Positions 9,899 to 60,631 of a stretch of DNA of 64,000 nucleotides are shown here, in pieces (within the stretch, counting starts at the first letter, position 1; each line of letters starts with the position of its first letter). Under the pieces are notes generated by a model. It was not told the origin of the DNA. It ran no database searches and saw only the letters and a list, made by a program, of their open reading frames with translations. Where the stretch lies: the sequence record MN159079.1; one strand, given 5' to 3'. The translations under genes were made by a program, and so were the position numbers.

Positions 9899-9943
9899 TC
9901 TTCATTCTATATTTGTTTTTGACATACATTCCATCTCAGATAG

Positions 9944-9959
9944 ATATTACCTAAGTGAT
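9944..9959 (+). promoter_or_regulatory. putative phage early promoter
   Basis: ATATTACCTAAGTGAT, identical to 59951-59966. Confidence 0.65.
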
Positions 9960-9994
9960 AGATAACCAATATCTTTTATTCACACTTAGGAGAG

Positions 9995-11966: not shown

Positions 11967-11991
11967 AGTTATATTACTGTTTTTTTTTTGG

Positions 11992-24781: not shown

Positions 24782-24808
24782 GTTATGCACTTCATTTATT
24801 TCAAACCG

Positions 24809-24824
24809 ATATTACTTAGTTGAT
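24809..24824 (+). promoter_or_regulatory. putative phage early promoter
   Basis: ATATTACTTAGTTGAT. Confidence 0.55.
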
Positions 24825-24891
24825 AAGCCATGTCGGTTTATTGTCAGTTGCAGCAACAACTGACATCACCCTTCAACTCTAGGAGTACTAC

Positions 24892-25081: not shown

Positions 25082-25106
25082 TATTACAACCAGATCTATT
25101 TTTTTT

Positions 25107-25799
25107 TTATGCAAAATACATTGCGGCTTTTGCTTGTTTCTGCATGTCGGTCATTTTGTTCCGTTTCTTGGTGATTGCGCATTTGGAACTCTTCTGGAGT
25201 TTCAGAATAGTTTCAACGTTGTGCTGATCTTCAGAAAGGATATGGACGACCGTGTCGGATGTTTCTTCGAGATACTTGAGTGCTTTCTTGTACTTGGTGC
25301 GATAGCTCTCGAATACGGCTTTATCCAGGAACATGCGGTCCTTGGCATCAACTGGTCGACCACTGGCTTCTACATCGTTGAAACGTTTCACGAACGTCTC
25401 GTGAGTGATATCAACGAAGAAGATAATGTCGGGGTTGATGTTGTACCCGTAGGTTTGCAGCAGGCGACGGTTGTATTCCAATACTTCTACCATGCTCACA
25501 GCGTCATCGGATTGATACACCATGGAAGACACCACGTTGCGATCAGAGATGACATCACGGCTATGTGAAAGGTACGGATGGATGACCTGCTTAAAAGCTT
25601 CAACACGAGCTACTGCGTAACCCTGGATCTCTTCATCCTTGGTCAGCGTGTTGGATACCAGCTTTTCTTTCAGTGCTTTGAAGGACGGAGAACCGGTAAA
25701 GGGTTCCATCACTTGTTTGGCTTTGGTGTGCTTGGCGTGCGCATTTGCCAGTGTGGATTTACCTGCGAAATCCAGACCTTCATAGACTATGTAACTCAC
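25107..25799 (-). CDS. tmk: thymidylate (dTMP) kinase
   Basis: IVYEGLDFAGKST P-loop, EPF, SDRNVVSSMVYQ, PDIIFFVDI. Confidence 0.9.
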   Translation of the reverse strand: MSYIVYEGLDFAGKSTLANAHAKHTKAKQVMEPFTGSPSFKALKEKLVSNTLTKDEEIQGYAVARVEAFKQVIHPYLSHSRDVISDRNVVSSMVYQSDDAVSMVEVLEYNRRLLQTYGYNINPDIIFFVDITHETFVKRFNDVEASGRPVDAKDRMFLDKAVFESYRTKYKKALKYLEETSDTVVHILSEDQHNVETILKLQKSSKCAITKKRNKMTDMQKQAKAAMYFA

Positions 25800-54025: not shown

Positions 54026-56014
54026 ATGTCCGATAAACCTTCCAACAAAGGTTTCAGTCTCCCTGGACAAGACAGTCCTAGTGAAACTGGTGCCCAACAC
54101 CAACCTGCCGTATCTGAAGTTCAAACCAAACCCGTAACCACCCTCAAAGAAGGAAAAGTGAATATGTCTATCAACTCCCTGGCCTCCCTGATCGGTATGT
54201 CCTCCCTGGTTTCCCAAGCTGGCACCATCCCGGAAGTGAAAGCAATCGCCAAAGGTATCGACGACGCCGTGGCTGATCTGAAGCGTCAGATCGCTACCCC
54301 TGAGCAAATGGCAACCCTGCCGGCCGACGTGACCCACCTGACCTCCGACATCACCCAGCACCTGCCGGGTATCGTACTGCCGCTGCGCCTGGGCCAGACC
54401 GTGTACGTGATGCCGATCCTGTTCTGGAAAGCCGGTGTGACCGACGCTACCGACACCATCATGGTGAACCAAGGTGAAGCACCGCGTGGTTTCGCCAAGA
54501 CCGCGTCCAGCTTCATGCACATCGACATGATCAACAAGATCCGCGACAGCTTCGCCTTCTACGGCGAGAAGAAAGCTGACGAAGTCATGGCCACCAGCCC
54601 CTGCGTGATCAACCTGGAGCACTGGATCAAGGAAGGCAAGAACACCGAAGAAATGGTGCGCGAAGTCGTCAACGTGATCCTGACCGAATGGCACGCTGGT
54701 CTGATGACCCTGGGCGTGATGCTGACCACCAAGGCCGGCGGTACCATCCCCAGCCCGTTCAAGAACAGCAAGCTGTTCGGTGATCAGGACACTGCCATCG
54801 CTCGTGTAGAAGCTGCCTACAACCCGGTCATCCGTGGTGTCACCACCGGTTACAACCTGGCTGTCAACATCTCTACCGCGCCGAAGAACGCTCACATGGT
54901 CCACACCAACAACATGAACGCCAAGTCGGTCTGCAAGACCTTCCTGAACGTCCAGTTGGACACCATGCAGCCGCAGCAGTACGGTCATCTCCGTCAGCGT
55001 GCCGGTATGGGTCAGAACGTTGGTCCGATCGTTCCGGTCATCTCCATCGGTCAGACCATCCCGGGTGAAACCCTGAACCACAACCAGTCCATCCTGTCGG
55101 CCGCCCTGGGTCTGTTCGCAGCCCTGACCGCCAACAACCTGCGTTTCTACTCCGAAGCAATCCGTGCCAAGGAAGTGGGTCACCGCGGTAACCTGGCTGT
55201 GTTCAACAACTACCTGTCCGCCATCACCCAGGGTCAGTACACCTCCGATCAGCTGCTGTCCGCCAAGAACATCAGCAACGTCGCCGTGGTGAACGACTGG
55301 ATCCAACGCTTCGTGAACAGCCGCGCTGTCTACGTAGTCGACGTACCGACCTTCGGTCCGGATTCCAGCATCTCTGACTTCTGGATGGGCATGGCCAAGT
55401 TCGGTCCGGGTTCCCTGTACCAGAACACTCTGATCGCCATCTTCGATGCACTGACCAACAAGAAGTTCAGCGAGAAGGCAGAAGAGAACGCCAAGATGGC
55501 TCAGCGTGATCCGTCCAAGCACTGGACCAAGGCCGACAAGGTTCTGTCCCTGACCCAGATGATCGTCCCGCGCGGCCGTGCTCAGGGCAAGGATGGCAAG
55601 TGGTTCTGCCTGAGCGAAATCGATGGCATGTTCCTGCGTCAGACCGAGTACCTGGGTACCAACGAAGTCGAGATCGCCGAGTACCAAGCTCTGGTACAAG
55701 GTTCCGTTCCGGGCGTTGATCGTCGCACCCGCGAGTTCAACCTGATCAACAAGCTCCAGCACATGTTCCAGGGCAACGTGATCATCGATGGTTTCGATGC
55801 TCGCCTGATCTGGTCCTCTGCGCTGTTCAACACCCTGGCCGAAGCAATGGTTTCCACCGGTACTCTGACCGTGAACTCCAGCGCTCACCAGTCCAACTGG
55901 ACCATGGAATACTCCAACGAGCTGTTCGACCACTTCATGACTGCCGGTATCGTTCCGCAAGTCGGTGGTGGCGCGAGCGCTGCTCAGTTCGGCATGTACT
56001 CCAACCTGGTCTAA
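54026..56014 (+). CDS. chmA: chimallin (phage nuclear shell protein)
   Basis: 662 aa with the strongest codon bias in the window and a disordered N-terminus; located between the gp52-like gene and nvRNAP beta-prime, with an early promoter; motif pattern recalls chimallins. Confidence 0.82.
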   Translation: MSDKPSNKGFSLPGQDSPSETGAQHQPAVSEVQTKPVTTLKEGKVNMSINSLASLIGMSSLVSQAGTIPEVKAIAKGIDDAVADLKRQIATPEQMATLPADVTHLTSDITQHLPGIVLPLRLGQTVYVMPILFWKAGVTDATDTIMVNQGEAPRGFAKTASSFMHIDMINKIRDSFAFYGEKKADEVMATSPCVINLEHWIKEGKNTEEMVREVVNVILTEWHAGLMTLGVMLTTKAGGTIPSPFKNSKLFGDQDTAIARVEAAYNPVIRGVTTGYNLAVNISTAPKNAHMVHTNNMNAKSVCKTFLNVQLDTMQPQQYGHLRQRAGMGQNVGPIVPVISIGQTIPGETLNHNQSILSAALGLFAALTANNLRFYSEAIRAKEVGHRGNLAVFNNYLSAITQGQYTSDQLLSAKNISNVAVVNDWIQRFVNSRAVYVVDVPTFGPDSSISDFWMGMAKFGPGSLYQNTLIAIFDALTNKKFSEKAEENAKMAQRDPSKHWTKADKVLSLTQMIVPRGRAQGKDGKWFCLSEIDGMFLRQTEYLGTNEVEIAEYQALVQGSVPGVDRRTREFNLINKLQHMFQGNVIIDGFDARLIWSSALFNTLAEAMVSTGTLTVNSSAHQSNWTMEYSNELFDHFMTAGIVPQVGGGASAAQFGMYSNLV

Positions 56015-56766: not shown

Positions 56767-58368
56767 GTGAGTACCATTATCCGAGTTCTTAAGGATTACT
56801 CCGAAGAACAATTACTTCCTCAAAATCTCTTCAACCAGATTCTCGAGGGCACGGGGTATATTCCGGAAATGGATGATGAGCGGTTCTATACTGCAATCTA
56901 TCCCCATTTCGAAAACTACGACCAACGACACGACAACTGCACAACACTCCCGATCTACCTGAATGACCACGACTTTCGAATCGAAGAAGATCGTGAACGT
57001 ATCGTGCAAGCCCTTCGTACCGAGTATGAAGGTAACACATTCGATACGGTTGCAGTTTGTTCACCCAGCTGCGGTAAGTATCGCGGCAACATGTATCTCA
57101 ACTCTGGGATTGTCTGTGACGTTTGTGGCGAGACACCAAGTCGTCCACTGAGCGAACAGATCGAGACCAAGGTTTGGTTGAGAACTCCACCCAGGGTTTC
57201 TGGTTTCCTGTCACCGGCTATATATGAGGTATTCCTCAGTAAGCTCAAAACCAAAACACCGAAAATCAATTTCGTTCAGTATTGGATGGATGAAGGTTAT
57301 CGGAGAGACAAACGGTTCCGTGATCCAGTAGGTGAAACACCGGCGTACAAAATGGCTCAGAAGCTCAATGCTTTTAGTAGTGCCATTGGTATCGACTTCG
57401 GGTACAATAATTTTATCGATAACATCGATACGATTATCAATGCAGCAGTCACCCAAGACTTTATGGGGATCCTCGATCTCAATGAAGTACAACGTGACCA
57501 TTGCACCCGGTTCTGGGCCAAGTATAAGGAGTTTGCAGTTAGCAACTTCCTTCCGCTTCCGAACAAGATTGCCACGGTGATCGAATCTGACCAACGTGAC
57601 CGTTACGTCAACAAGGAAAAGACTGATCTGGAAAAGATCTTCTTTACCATAGCAGATATGTATCACGAAATGGACCATCGTTCTGTTCAGAACGAAGTTC
57701 TGTTCGGTAAGAACTATTTCGAGATGCAGGCAGTGATGCTCAAAGTGATGAAAGAGATTCTCTTTAAGAAGAAGGGGATGTTCCGATATCACGCCGGGGC
57801 TGGTAAACTGCCATTTACTGGGCGCTCCATCATTACCGGTGAATCAGGCGTTTGTCGTTCTGATACCGTGGTGGTTCCCTGGCTTTATGGCATCACCTGT
57901 TTGAACCATCATCTGACCAACTGGTTGTACCGTCGCGGTTATACACCCAAAGCGGTTAAGCGGATCATCCGTGAATCTGCCAACTTCCGTCACCCGGTGA
58001 TAGAAGAGTTCTTTGACTGGGTGGAGAACAACCGCTATGCTGTAGCAACAGTAGGTCGTAACCCATCGATTCAGTTCTTGTCATCAAGAACTTTCTTCAT
58101 CAAGTTCAACCGGGATATTGAGGATAAGTCTATTCGTATCCCAATCACCTGCGTGAAAGAATTTGGTGCTGACTTCGATGGAGACCAGATGTACGTATGG
58201 TTCATTCCGGACCTGTTCGGTAAAGTTGCTGGCTACGCCAACTTTGGTCATCAGCAAATGCTCGACCCGAACAAACCGTTCCGTACCAGTCGGTTCGCAA
58301 CTCGCGCCAAGAACGTTCTTCTCAACCTCAACTCGCAATTATTGGACGAGCCAATAGCGGAGGATTAA
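56767..58368 (+). CDS. non-virion RNA polymerase beta-prime N-terminal subunit (phiKZ gp55-like)
   Basis: Zn finger C-x3-C...C-x2-C, K..K.G.FR, FTGRSII, GRNPS, catalytic GADFDGD; GTG start with AAAGGAG. Confidence 0.92.
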   Translation: MSTIIRVLKDYSEEQLLPQNLFNQILEGTGYIPEMDDERFYTAIYPHFENYDQRHDNCTTLPIYLNDHDFRIEEDRERIVQALRTEYEGNTFDTVAVCSPSCGKYRGNMYLNSGIVCDVCGETPSRPLSEQIETKVWLRTPPRVSGFLSPAIYEVFLSKLKTKTPKINFVQYWMDEGYRRDKRFRDPVGETPAYKMAQKLNAFSSAIGIDFGYNNFIDNIDTIINAAVTQDFMGILDLNEVQRDHCTRFWAKYKEFAVSNFLPLPNKIATVIESDQRDRYVNKEKTDLEKIFFTIADMYHEMDHRSVQNEVLFGKNYFEMQAVMLKVMKEILFKKKGMFRYHAGAGKLPFTGRSIITGESGVCRSDTVVVPWLYGITCLNHHLTNWLYRRGYTPKAVKRIIRESANFRHPVIEEFFDWVENNRYAVATVGRNPSIQFLSSRTFFIKFNRDIEDKSIRIPITCVKEFGADFDGDQMYVWFIPDLFGKVAGYANFGHQQMLDPNKPFRTSRFATRAKNVLLNLNSQLLDEPIAED

Positions 58369-58373
58369 TAATA

Positions 58374-59039
58374 GTGATCAATGTAACAAGCGCGTTCTCA
58401 ATGGGTATCGGTGGTAGCATGTCGAAAGCCGCTGCCGATGTTTATAACCAAACTCTGACTTCGATATATGACGGGATGTCGAACCTGGGTGGTTGGTTGG
58501 GTGGCGCTGTCCAATCGGTTGTCCAAAGCCATGAAAACTTCATGAACTCTAACATGTGGGAGTTCAGTAAGCGGATTGGTAAAGACGGTCACTATGTTGG
58601 ACGTTTCGATGTAGGTTACCTGTCGGAAGTGGGTTATCAACAACAAGCTGTCGGGTTGATGCGGAACTACATCATGGCTAACCCCAAGATGATGGAACTG
58701 TACGAGGCCGATCGCATATCTGGTTATGATGGTGAAATCTCTGATCTCTGTAGTGGGATCGGTCGTGACAACTATTTCTATAACCGTGCTGTTGATGGCC
58801 TGATGCGCATCGAAGATGATGAAGCGGTGCGTACCCACTACGCCACATCTCTCGACAAGTATACCCACTTGTCAGCGATGGAACGTGTGGATATCAAACG
58901 TACCTGGGCGGCTAGCAATATTCATATTGCTAAGAACCTCTTTGACCCAAGTAGTATTTCTGGCGGGAAAATTCTTTCTGTAGAGGAAGTTGAAGCCATC
59001 CAGAAACAAATGGAAGAAGAAGCGGGCGACGCCCAGTAA
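58374..59039 (+). CDS. conserved nucleus-block protein (phiKZ gp59 position)
   Basis: 221 aa immediately after the nvRNAP subunit; assignment by synteny only; terminator 59047-59072. Confidence 0.6.
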   Translation: MINVTSAFSMGIGGSMSKAAADVYNQTLTSIYDGMSNLGGWLGGAVQSVVQSHENFMNSNMWEFSKRIGKDGHYVGRFDVGYLSEVGYQQQAVGLMRNYIMANPKMMELYEADRISGYDGEISDLCSGIGRDNYFYNRAVDGLMRIEDDEAVRTHYATSLDKYTHLSAMERVDIKRTWAASNIHIAKNLFDPSSISGGKILSVEEVEAIQKQMEEEAGDAQ

Positions 59040-59109
59040 TAGGTGGGAGCTAACCGGGAGACCGGTTAGCTCTTCCTTTATATAGTTATTTTTTTTTTAG
59101 GAGTGTTAT

Positions 59110-59442
59110 ATGACCCCCGAAATTATCCATGAAGACAGTGTTGTTACCGCATTCAAAGTGAATGACCATCTCTACGGCGTTCACCCCAAGAACCTTGAAG
59201 TGGGGACTTATCAAGGCGTGGTCAAGTTCCAAAAAGGAGATCCGGCAATAGAAGAGAATGGTTTGACCTTGGAAGCACTACTCGCGATCTGTATCAGTCG
59301 GCTGGATAGTTGTAACCAAGGTAACTTCAAATGTCTCCATAACGATCTCGCAATCGAACATATGAAAGCTGCCAAGGTAGCTCTCGAAGAAAGACAGTCC
59401 GATCGCAAGAACCGTTTTGTACTTGCTACCGATAAGGTGTAA
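59110..59442 (+). CDS. tad1: Tad1-family immune-signal sponge
   Basis: FQKGD..NGL..EALLAICISRL..N.G.F.C.HN.LAI.....A...L..R..DR..R aligns with the recalled Tad1 pattern FQEGP..NGV..EDL......RL..FQ...F.CREN..AI..LEEA...L..R...R..R. Confidence 0.7.
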   Translation: MTPEIIHEDSVVTAFKVNDHLYGVHPKNLEVGTYQGVVKFQKGDPAIEENGLTLEALLAICISRLDSCNQGNFKCLHNDLAIEHMKAAKVALEERQSDRKNRFVLATDKV

Positions 59443-59443
59443 T

Positions 59444-59929
59444 ATGAAATTTGGTTATTCAAAGTTGATGCTGGATCTTGGATCAGCATCCAGAATCCGC
59501 AAAGCGGCCATGAAGGTCATCGAAGGGACCGAGAAAGAAAAGGACCAAGCAGTCCTCGACGTAATCAACATCCCTGCAACCGAACTCCACGCCACACTGA
59601 TGTATGACAAACGTAATCCGGATATCATTCCGGATACCAACCGTGCATCATATAAGGCAAAGGTAACCGGTGTTGAACGTCTGGGTACGCCAGGTGGTAA
59701 CTACTACGCCCTGGTACTGCTTTGCGAGTCAGAAGGGATTACAAAACGTCACGAAGAACTTCTCGAACAAGGTTTCAAGCATAGCTGGCCTGACCTGAAG
59801 ATTCACGTTTCACTCAACTATGGTGACCAGGTTACCGTTGCGTACCCCATTATCAAGGAAGCCTTCGAGAAGGGTTATCTCCCTACCGAAGTGACCTTGG
59901 GTGCTGAGTGCTGGAACGAGTGTCGTTAA
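59444..59929 (+). CDS. acb1: Acb1-like 2H phosphodiesterase
   Basis: Two HxT/S motifs (LHATLMY, IHVSLNY); ALVLLCES...RH...G..HSWPD..IHVSLNY parallels T4 Acb1 TLVLVLDS...RH...G.THDFDD..PHITLSY. Confidence 0.7.
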   Translation: MKFGYSKLMLDLGSASRIRKAAMKVIEGTEKEKDQAVLDVINIPATELHATLMYDKRNPDIIPDTNRASYKAKVTGVERLGTPGGNYYALVLLCESEGITKRHEELLEQGFKHSWPDLKIHVSLNYGDQVTVAYPIIKEAFEKGYLPTEVTLGAECWNECR

Positions 59930-59950
59930 GATGGAAGAAGTTTCAGGCAT

Positions 59951-59966
59951 ATATTACCTAAGTGAT
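59951..59966 (+). promoter_or_regulatory. putative phage early promoter
   Basis: (T)ATATTACCTAAGTGAT. Confidence 0.65.
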
Positions 59967-60001
59967 AACATAACCATGTTTAACAATTAGAGGTAACTAC
60001 C

Positions 60002-60151
60002 ATGTTTGAAGCAATGTCCAACTCCCAAGCTTTCGGTTTCGCTTTCTTCGGTGCTATCGGCGTAATCGCTGTTATCGCTATCGGTGCCAATGAATACTTC
60101 AAAGCCAAGAAAGCTCTGAAGCGTCCGATGGCTACTCGCAACAAGCGTTGA
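60002..60151 (+). CDS. small single-pass membrane protein (49 aa)
   Basis: GAGG RBS; TM helix AFGFAFFGAIGVIAVIAIG then a basic tail; own terminator 60157-60179. Confidence 0.75.
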   Translation: MFEAMSNSQAFGFAFFGAIGVIAVIAIGANEYFKAKKALKRPMATRNKR

Positions 60152-60217
60152 TATCAACCCTCTCCCATTGGGAGAGGGTAGTTTCAATTACATTTATTTT
60201 TTTTTGTCGAGGTTCAT

Positions 60218-60631
60218 ATGGCAAATGGTTGCTGTGCAACAATGTCCACTGTGGGTTATCTCTACGAACCGCTGGCTCAAATCGACAGGTTAATCGCTTG
60301 GTGGTTTGCTAATCGGATCGATCAGTCAGTGATACTCACTGATATTCAATCTTACCAATACGTTGTCGCAAGTCATCAGAACGATTTCCGTATTGATGAG
60401 TTCCTGCAAGATGTTCAACGTAATCTTCAATCCTACCTCATGGAATGCTTCGAGGGTGCTGAAGTTAAAGCAACCGCCCCTAATTATGAGGAAGGTGGAA
60501 AGATGTTCCATCTCCACATCAGTGGGGTAGTAGAACGTAACGGAGTTCGCTATGATGTAGCAAGTGCAGTTGCACTTAGCGGTAAAACCTTCGAACTTGT
60601 TGAAAACGGGAGAAAGAGAATTGCAAGATAA
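60218..60631 (+). CDS. conserved phiKZ-like protein
   Basis: 137 aa with GAGG RBS; core-block synteny. Confidence 0.75.
   Translation: MANGCCATMSTVGYLYEPLAQIDRLIAWWFANRIDQSVILTDIQSYQYVVASHQNDFRIDEFLQDVQRNLQSYLMECFEGAEVKATAPNYEEGGKMFHLHISGVVERNGVRYDVASAVALSGKTFELVENGRKRIAR

Follow-up and report, generated by a model that had tools for sequence, protein, structure and literature searches.

Tad1 sponges and Acb1 nucleases are two families of phage proteins that inhibit nucleotide signalling in bacterial immunity. In CbTad1, cyclic dinucleotides occupy the same pocket as the Thoeris signal glycocyclic ADP-ribose (gcADPR), while the binding of cyclic trinucleotides requires a hexamer whose interface includes a Trp residue (bioRxiv 10.1101/2023.11.15.567273). 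Tad1 ligands come off intact upon proteinase K treatment (bioRxiv 10.1101/2023.11.15.567273). Acb1 cuts cyclic GMP-AMP (cGAMP), cUA, cAAA, and cAAG, requires an adenosine, and spares cA4 and 3′2′-cGAMP (Hobbs et al., PMC9117128). It is described as a monomeric enzyme working on free ligand (PMC9117128). Anti-defence islands have also been described, and anti-defence genes are often less than 1 kb apart (17.8% of the systems in phages). As for jumbo phages, a 2026 review presents the Tad1 of phiKZ (gp184), which has already been published, as the sole anti-defence protein described. Annotation of the AntiDefenseFinder type has found tad1 as well as acb1 among other jumbo phages, but never both in one genome. 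Here I describe a Tad1-like gene (ORF1, for open reading frame 1) followed by an Acb1-like gene (ORF2) in a stretch of 64,000 nucleotides of sequence record MN159079.1. This whole stretch is called the window, and all positions are given in it unless another locus is named. At 100% identity, the region matches Aeromonas phage D9, which by its gene content belongs to the nucleus-forming jumbo phages (chimalliviruses).

The analysis followed up a prediction made by a model from the letters alone, without database searches. In this original prediction, the two genes formed a coupled catch-and-destroy cassette, inserted as a discrete unit into a conserved gene block, and the pairing was thought to be undescribed in this phage family. 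As to the last point, no paper describing a Tad1-like/Acb1-like pairing was found in a literature search, and the genome papers of AerS_266, BMBAH1, and Vera/Igor do not mention these genes. [quoted passage not shown] Both families are known, and no discussion of their conserved paired arrangement was found in the literature searched.

Family assignment of ORF1 and ORF2

ORF1 (59110..59442, + strand) encodes 110 amino acid residues and can be assigned to the Tad1 family by homology and by its predicted fold. It matches phrog_2428 at 2e-17, and the founding SBSphiJ7 Tad1 of a Bacillus phage belongs to the same PHROG (8e-47, full length). A direct search of the PDB with ORF1 found Tad1 chains at about 3e-4, and BLASTP aligned ORF1 with SBSphiJ7 Tad1 at 33% identity over residues 23-107 (8e-11, pairwise). 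An exhaustive HMMER search from ORF1 yielded 629 representatives at E <= 0.001, and the nearest 108 of similar size were used to build a profile. In the PDB, this profile matched only Tad1 chains and phiKZ gp184, over the full length and at 5e-30 to 1e-24. The AlphaFold2 model of ORF1, with a predicted local distance difference test score (pLDDT) of 93.5, has strands at residues 4-8, 12-18, 21-26, and 36-40 and helices at 54-68 and 76-101. When Foldseek was run with this model, the top 20 matches were all Tad1, with template modelling (TM) scores of 0.73-0.82, and the next match had an E-value of 0.4. Thus, the Tad1-like call of the original prediction agrees with the shared PHROG, the profile, and the Foldseek result. 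ORF1 had first been suspected to be an Acb2 from its hairpin motif; this was rejected, since neither ORF1 nor its profile matched an Acb2 chain in the PDB and a beta-sheet domain is present in the model. A word-indexed protein search with ORF1 found nothing beyond its own cluster, a scan of IMG/VR with the single protein gave no match, and no NCBIfam model covers ORF1 or ORF2.

What would ORF1 bind? In CbTad1, the double mutations F82A/N92A and R109A/R113A each severely cut gcADPR binding, and R90A and T97A each markedly lower the binding of cA3 (bioRxiv 10.1101/2023.11.15.567273). That all six residue identities fit simultaneously supports the numbering offset used between CbTad1 and ORF1. 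N92, R109, and R113 of CbTad1 correspond to N78, R95, and R99 of ORF1, which are invariant in an alignment of 10 sequences and nearly so in one of 109; the latter was too diverse for pattern scans. R90 and T97 correspond to L76 and E83, and the entire chimallivirus clade is non-basic or acidic at these sites. All the chimallivirus ORF1 orthologues in the 10-sequence alignment share the ligand-site pattern of D9. These correspondences suggest that the pocket for gcADPR and dinucleotides is kept in ORF1 while the trinucleotide site is absent. The missing trinucleotide residues concern the subtype of ORF1 and not its membership of the Tad1 family.

ORF2 (59444..59929, + strand) encodes 161 amino acid residues and can likewise be assigned, from sequence and predicted structure, to the Acb1 family of 2H phosphodiesterases. 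It scores 55.3 bits (8.1e-15; cut-off 27) on the Pfam family Acb1 (PF23474), which all its close homologues also carry. Its two histidine motifs, H49-A-T51 (in LHATLMY) and H121-V-S123 (in IHVSLNY), are invariant in 25 relatives and align with the two HxT motifs of the FBB1 Acb1 (7T26). The two histidines are 72 residues apart, compared with 70 in FBB1, so that the HAT and HVS motifs and the Acb1-like spacing read from the letters are borne out. A direct PDB search with ORF2 matched the Acb1 entry 7t26 at 1.7e-4, and when the PDB was searched with a profile of the ORF2 clade, the matches at E <= 0.01 were confined to its three Acb1 sequences (1e-9 to 2e-6). The AlphaFold2 model, for which the alignment rows were IMG/VR-derived relatives, has a pLDDT of 94.0, and helices 12-23 and 30-40 form an extra N-terminal helical segment in it. 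The top five Foldseek matches of this model are phage Acb1 structures (9q2y, 7t26, 7t27, and 9q2g; E 1.6e-7 to 5e-6), while the 2H enzymes other than Acb1 come only at E-values of at least 2e-3, with a plant cyclic phosphodiesterase (CPDase) at 2e-3 and LigT at an E-value of at least 0.065. The Acb1-like call is therefore upheld by Pfam, by the profile, and by Foldseek, and a LigT-type enzyme, the alternative that had been named together with it, is disfavoured.

Acb1 has the stacking aromatics Y12, W74, F107, and W147, a Glu residue that reads adenine (E141), and a lid at residues 145-152 (PMC9117128). The ORF2 clade has an invariant Y5 and an invariant W157, both of which lie outside the stretch alignable with Acb1. 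The substrate range of ORF2 is taken from the family only, because the lid, the adenine-reading Glu, and the base-stacking residues are not alignable. A literature search on the BCSR5 Acb1 structures found no relevant paper.

Many database labels of these genes are misleading: 'ABC transporter ATPase' (N1M2_39, SXP01, and OLIVR5), 'RNA ligase' (many), and 'structural protein' (some Bacillus phages). The depositor's name of the PDB Tad1 entry 7UAV is also 'ABC transporter ATPase'. The labels 'RNA ligase' and 'ABC transporter ATPase' are corrected by the family assignments made here.

Co-inheritance and proposed function

Is this pairing common in chimalliviruses? By tblastn, the two genes were found adjacent in the four Ludhianavirus phages and in CF8, AhC3_1, ZPAH34, AerS_266, PS1, PS2, ACP1, AVP1, and pAEv1810. 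Outside the Aeromonas phages, the adjacent pair is present in Pseudomonas phage OBP, Serratia phages Yubaba and Sureiya, Klebsiella phage N1M2, and Shewanella phage SXP01. Among the Aeromonas records, 19 have ORF1, 19 have ORF2, and 19 have a homologue of phiKZ gp59, the gene upstream of the pair; therefore, the pair is present in all the Aeromonas chimallivirus records of the collection. In the nine phages examined, the junction between ORF1 and ORF2 is always tight: at one extreme the genes overlap by 1 nucleotide (nt), and at the other they are 9 nt apart. In the subclade of OBP, pEt-SU, and the Aeromonas phages, the Acb1-like gene is fixed at the slot between the gp59 homologue and the gp62 homologue. 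On the other hand, only one of the 33 Tad1-like loci in IMG/VR has an Acb1-like gene within 2.5 kb, and only one of the 17 Acb1-like loci has a Tad1-like partner; both are OBP. The association arose once and does not recur beyond this branch. Thus, the co-occurrence survey that the original prediction had called for finds the genes adjacent in all 19 Aeromonas records and in OBP, N1M2, Yubaba, Sureiya, and SXP01, but not recurrently elsewhere.

The pair has diverged together with a core gene. Over 36 phage pairs, the identities of the Tad1-like protein, the Acb1-like protein, and the gp59 homologue (46%, 51%, and 62% on average) correlate with r = 0.86-0.92. The G+C content of the pair (0.445-0.495) is the same as that of the flanks. 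A recent horizontal insertion of the pair was considered and rejected in view of the normal G+C content and the co-divergence with the core gene. The pair has thus long occupied this variable slot and has been inherited vertically; in some lineages, the sponge gene was lost later. What had been called a discrete insert is thus discrete in that the slot between the gp59 and gp62 homologues is variable, but it is not a newcomer.

Some details of the Tad1-like gene differ among the relatives. The annotated starts of OBP_060 (L005 2315-2821) and of the SXP01 gene (L007 2249-2773) look too short; the frame stays open upstream in both and would give an N-terminal extension like those of N1M2 and Yubaba (141-151 residues). 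Between N1M2 and Yubaba, the Acb1-like proteins are 88% and the gp59 homologues 94% identical, while the Tad1-like proteins are just 65% identical.

It is likely that ORF1 and ORF2 make up an accessory operon of two independent inhibitors of host nucleotide immune signalling, with ligands as follows. ORF1 would be a free-standing, stoichiometric sponge. Its most likely ligand is the Thoeris signal gcADPR, bound in the pocket of N78, R95, and R99, and cyclic dinucleotides may be further ligands in the same pocket. Binding of cyclic trinucleotides by ORF1 is improbable, since L76 and E83 take the places of the phosphate-binding Arg and Thr. ORF2 would be a metal-independent enzyme that most likely linearises adenosine-containing, 3′-5′-linked cyclic di- and trinucleotides. 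[quoted passage not shown] Type III CRISPR signals, which the original prediction had listed among the possible targets, would thus be covered for cA3 at most, as cA4 is spared by T4 Acb1. Both proteins would be active in the cytoplasm, outside the protection of the phage nucleus. These ligand specificities, together with the oligomeric state, the expression timing, and the effect on defence, are predictions.

Several observations weigh against this proposal. No match of ORF1 to the Pfam hairpin model Acb2_Tad1_hairpin (PF24729; cut-off 27 bits) was found at E <= 1, nor were matches of three chimallivirus ORF1 orthologues found at E <= 0.1. F82 of CbTad1 corresponds to C68 of ORF1, which is variable in the clade, so that three of the four pocket residues are kept. 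The Trp of the Tad1 hexamer interface corresponds to A91, and the oligomeric state and the pocket geometry could differ. In addition, the N-terminal region is shorter than those of CbTad1 and SBSphiJ7 Tad1, and homologues of Tad1, Tad2, and Acb2 are known to inhibit widely differing systems (bioRxiv 10.1101/2025.08.24.671296). ORF1 might then be a Tad1 fold whose ligand has been lost or altered, for another signal or as a dimer of a different role, and Thoeris would remain uncovered. This is unlikely, as N78, R95, and R99 are conserved, the predicted fold is like that of ligand-bound Tad1 (TM about 0.8), and the gene has long been retained in many phages. The founding SBSphiJ7 Tad1 itself scores just 34.2 bits on PF24729; the missed match is a sensitivity limit of this 58-position model and leaves the fold evidence untouched. 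As for ORF2, Pfam and the PDB profiles align only its central residues 42-129 with Acb1, and all the sequence alignments together span only residues 39-133. ORF2 could instead be a LigT-type RNA 2′,3′-cyclic phosphodiesterase or a 2′-5′ RNA ligase for RNA or tRNA repair, as might be thought from the name 'RNA ligase' carried by phrog_755 and by most GenBank records of ORF2 orthologues, and from a weak match to the Pfam family 2_5_RNA_ligase2 (PF13563; 17.1 bits, E 0.0058). I regard such a repair enzyme as quite improbable. The match lies below the cut-off of 27 while Acb1 reaches 55.3 bits, the clade profile matches only Acb1 chains in the PDB (E <= 0.01), the Foldseek E-values of LigT are at least four orders of magnitude worse than those of phage Acb1, and ORF2 is compact (161 residues), as is Acb1.

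The last observation against two inhibitors kept together as one operon is that the two genes are separable: in pEt-SU, Kc263, AH04, Survivor, and four IMG/VR jumbo contigs, an Acb1-like gene stands at the same place but the Tad1-like gene is absent. This also bears on the idea that the sponge passes captured signals to the nuclease, so that both proteins form a single machine, coupled physically or kinetically. The tight, conserved junction does suggest co-expression in a near-fixed ratio, and the pair is kept across at least five genera. However, Tad1 gives back its ligand intact after proteinase K treatment (bioRxiv 10.1101/2023.11.15.567273), Acb1 is monomeric and works on free ligand, the Acb1-like gene is solitary in at least eight relatives, the association arose only once (1/33 and 1/17 in IMG/VR, both OBP), and the predicted ligand sets are mostly complementary rather than common. 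A handover from sponge to nuclease is unsupported because sequestration protects the ligand and the nuclease gene stands alone in related phages. The coupled catch-and-destroy cassette of the original prediction is therefore very improbable, and two independent inhibitors are preferred here.

Gene boundaries and the gp59-gp62 slot

ORF1 starts with ATG, with the Shine-Dalgarno-like AGGAG 5 nt before it, and ends with TAA at 59440-59442. ORF2 also starts with ATG, with the Shine-Dalgarno-like AAGGTG 5 nt before it. Only the single base T59443 lies between the stop codon of ORF1 and the start codon of ORF2, and the 1-nt distance stated in the original prediction is thus confirmed. A mechanical list of ORFs also gave an alternative start for ORF2, TTG at 59417; the alignment of the relatives begins at the ATG of 59444.

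Directly upstream of the pair is the unit of the phiKZ gp59 homologue (58374-59039; PHROGs and homology), which is closed by a GC-rich hairpin of 13 pairs (59045..59074, + strand). The hairpin is kept in all relatives examined, including pEt-SU, which has no Tad1-like gene. A run of ten T residues, also conserved in the relatives, follows at 59089..59098 (+ strand). The terminator that had been predicted here holds as far as the hairpin is concerned, but the T-run does not adjoin it directly, as a 14-nt spacer lies between them. The T-run might act as a terminator tail or as a promoter element. The window has just four runs of nine or more T residues (11980-11989, 25099-25108, 59089-59098, and 60197-60205, all on the + strand), each of which lies 13-17 nt past a perfect GC-rich hairpin and shortly before a gene start, and no run of eight or more A residues is found on the + strand of the window. 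This arrangement looks like a composite, terminator/promoter-like punctuation element.

Downstream of the pair, a promoter had been predicted at 59951. As a sigma-70 promoter the site is weak (9/12 positions). However, a longer promoter-like motif, TATATTACCTAAGTGATAA, the core of TTTCAGACCTATATTACYTAAGTGATAA, opens the next unit (59950..59968, + strand) and recurs at the equivalent intergenic site of seven relatives from at least four genera, namely pAEv1810, AerS_266, N1M2, CF8, Yubaba, PS1, and, in part, pEt-SU. TTTCAGACCTATATTACYTAAGTGATAA is conserved between phages with protein identities of only about 50%. With up to three mismatches, three copies of the 19-nt motif TATATTACYTAAGTGATAA are present in the window (9943-9961, 24808-24826, and 59950-59968, all on the + strand), compared with 0.02 expected, and the motif probably represents a class of phage promoters. 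TATATTACYTAAGTGATAA resembles TATATTAC, the core of the phiKZ early promoters. TATATTAC alone is not enriched in the window (3 matches vs 1.0 expected) and was dropped as promoter evidence by itself. The boundaries of the pair are thus real, and a regulatory function of the elements that mark them seems plausible.

The pair is located within a conserved gene block. Phages D3, D6, and LAh10 are 98-99% identical to D9 in this region, and all four belong to the genus Ludhianavirus. A product of 662 residues (54026-56014) is a putative chimallin; this was assigned via its 49% identity to the 'nuclear shell protein' of pEt-SU because a sequence search of Pfam and the PDB gave no match. It is followed by a gene for an RNA polymerase beta′-like subunit (56767-58368; Pfam RNA_pol_Rpb1_2) upstream of the pair. 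Downstream of the pair there are a small hydrophobic ORF of 49 residues (60002..60151, + strand; phrog_28777 at 0.0016), a homologue of phiKZ gp62 and OBP_063 annotated as 'virion structural protein' (60218-60631), and then an SbcD-like gene. A small ORF of 41-80 residues stands at the equivalent place in most relatives examined, and is absent there in SXP01. Aphrodite1 and RisingSun keep the small ORF though their slots have neither a Tad1-like nor an Acb1-like gene. The 49-residue ORF is a backbone gene and lies outside the two-gene module.

In D9, the slot extends from 59039 to 60218. Its occupants elsewhere are unrelated: gp60 and gp61 in phiKZ, Aphrodite1_0134, gp31 and gp32 in RisingSun, and 285, 286, and a TnpB/IS605-type transposase in Klebsiella phage Miami. 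In the locus sequences of other chimalliviruses, the slot spans L008 3074-3860 (phiKZ gp60 and gp61), L010 3186-3662, L011 3201-3960, and L009 3185-5097. PS1 has an additional gene of 347 residues just upstream of the Tad1-like gene (L015 1442-2485), with a sub-threshold match to HNH_3 (22.9 vs 24.8 bits), and AerS_266 has an additional gene of 158 residues just downstream of the Acb1-like gene (L004 3385-3861), to which no family was assigned. A distant Acb1-like gene is also present in Erwinia phage RisingSun, outside the gp59-gp62 slot (L030, record 121548-126820; 1.4e-18 to the clade profile).

The slot is possibly a hotspot for accessory or anti-defence genes. A bolder and rather doubtful view is that the pair is a selected division-of-labour module of one nucleus-forming branch and that the slot is an anti-defence hotspot of the whole family. 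If so, the sponge would take gcADPR and perhaps dinucleotides, and the nuclease would take the trinucleotides, including cA3, that the sponge cannot bind. In that event, phiKZ gp60 and gp61, Aphrodite1_0134, RisingSun gp31 and gp32, Miami 285 and 286, and the extra gene of AerS_266 would be undescribed counter-defence genes.

Significance and comparison with known systems

The phage nucleus protects the DNA of chimalliviruses against nucleases, and NucC is among the few defences known to reach these phages. Defences that signal in the cytoplasm and kill the cell, such as Thoeris, CBASS, and type III CRISPR with NucC, would still be able to attack them. A whole branch of chimalliviruses (the Aeromonas records, OBP, N1M2, Yubaba, Sureiya, and SXP01) holds a conserved operon of a predicted sponge and a predicted nuclease. 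It may serve as a cheap and testable system for how sponges and nucleases split the signal space, and the variable gp59-gp62 slot could be mined for more counter-defence genes. In the use of phages against Aeromonas in aquaculture, the pair may predict which host defences are tolerated by these phages.

Among the known systems, Tad1 (SBSphiJ7, CbTad1, and CmTad1; PDB 7UAV, 7UAW, and 8KBB-8KBH) resembles ORF1 in its PHROG and in full-length profile homology. The predicted fold of ORF1, an N-terminal antiparallel sheet followed by a two-helix hairpin, is alike as well, and the Asn/Arg/Arg of the pocket are kept. In contrast, ORF1 is only 27-33% identical to these proteins, is shorter (110 residues vs 123-142, with a shorter N-terminal part), and has no Pfam hairpin match. 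At the trinucleotide site, Leu and Glu stand in for Arg and Thr, the interface Trp is Ala, and F82 is Cys. The phiKZ gp184 (PDB 8Y6V chain I) is also a Tad1 domain of a nucleus-forming jumbo phage, and the trinucleotide-site Arg and Thr are missing from it, too. However, it has 230 residues and 24% identity to ORF1, and it is encoded at another locus without an Acb1-like neighbour. The phiKZ protein is anchored in the capsid and injected, whereas the free-standing ORF1 of D9 has to be made after infection.

Acb1 (the product of T4 gene 57B; Erwinia phage FBB1, 7T26 and 7T27; Burkholderia phage BCSR5, 9Q2G and 9Q2Y) resembles ORF2 in its Pfam family, 2H fold, motif spacing, and compactness. ORF2 differs in its identity of only about 20%, its extra N-terminal helices, HVS in place of the second HxT, and a C-terminal region in which the lid and stacking residues are unalignable. 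T4, which has Acb1, Acb2, and the Sequestin Y16O, resembles D9, as predicted here, in that one phage counters nucleotide signals with a sponge together with a nuclease. The sponge and nuclease genes of T4 are presumably not adjacent. In contrast, the predicted sponge and nuclease of the D9 branch are encoded in one closely packed operon, which several genera have retained.

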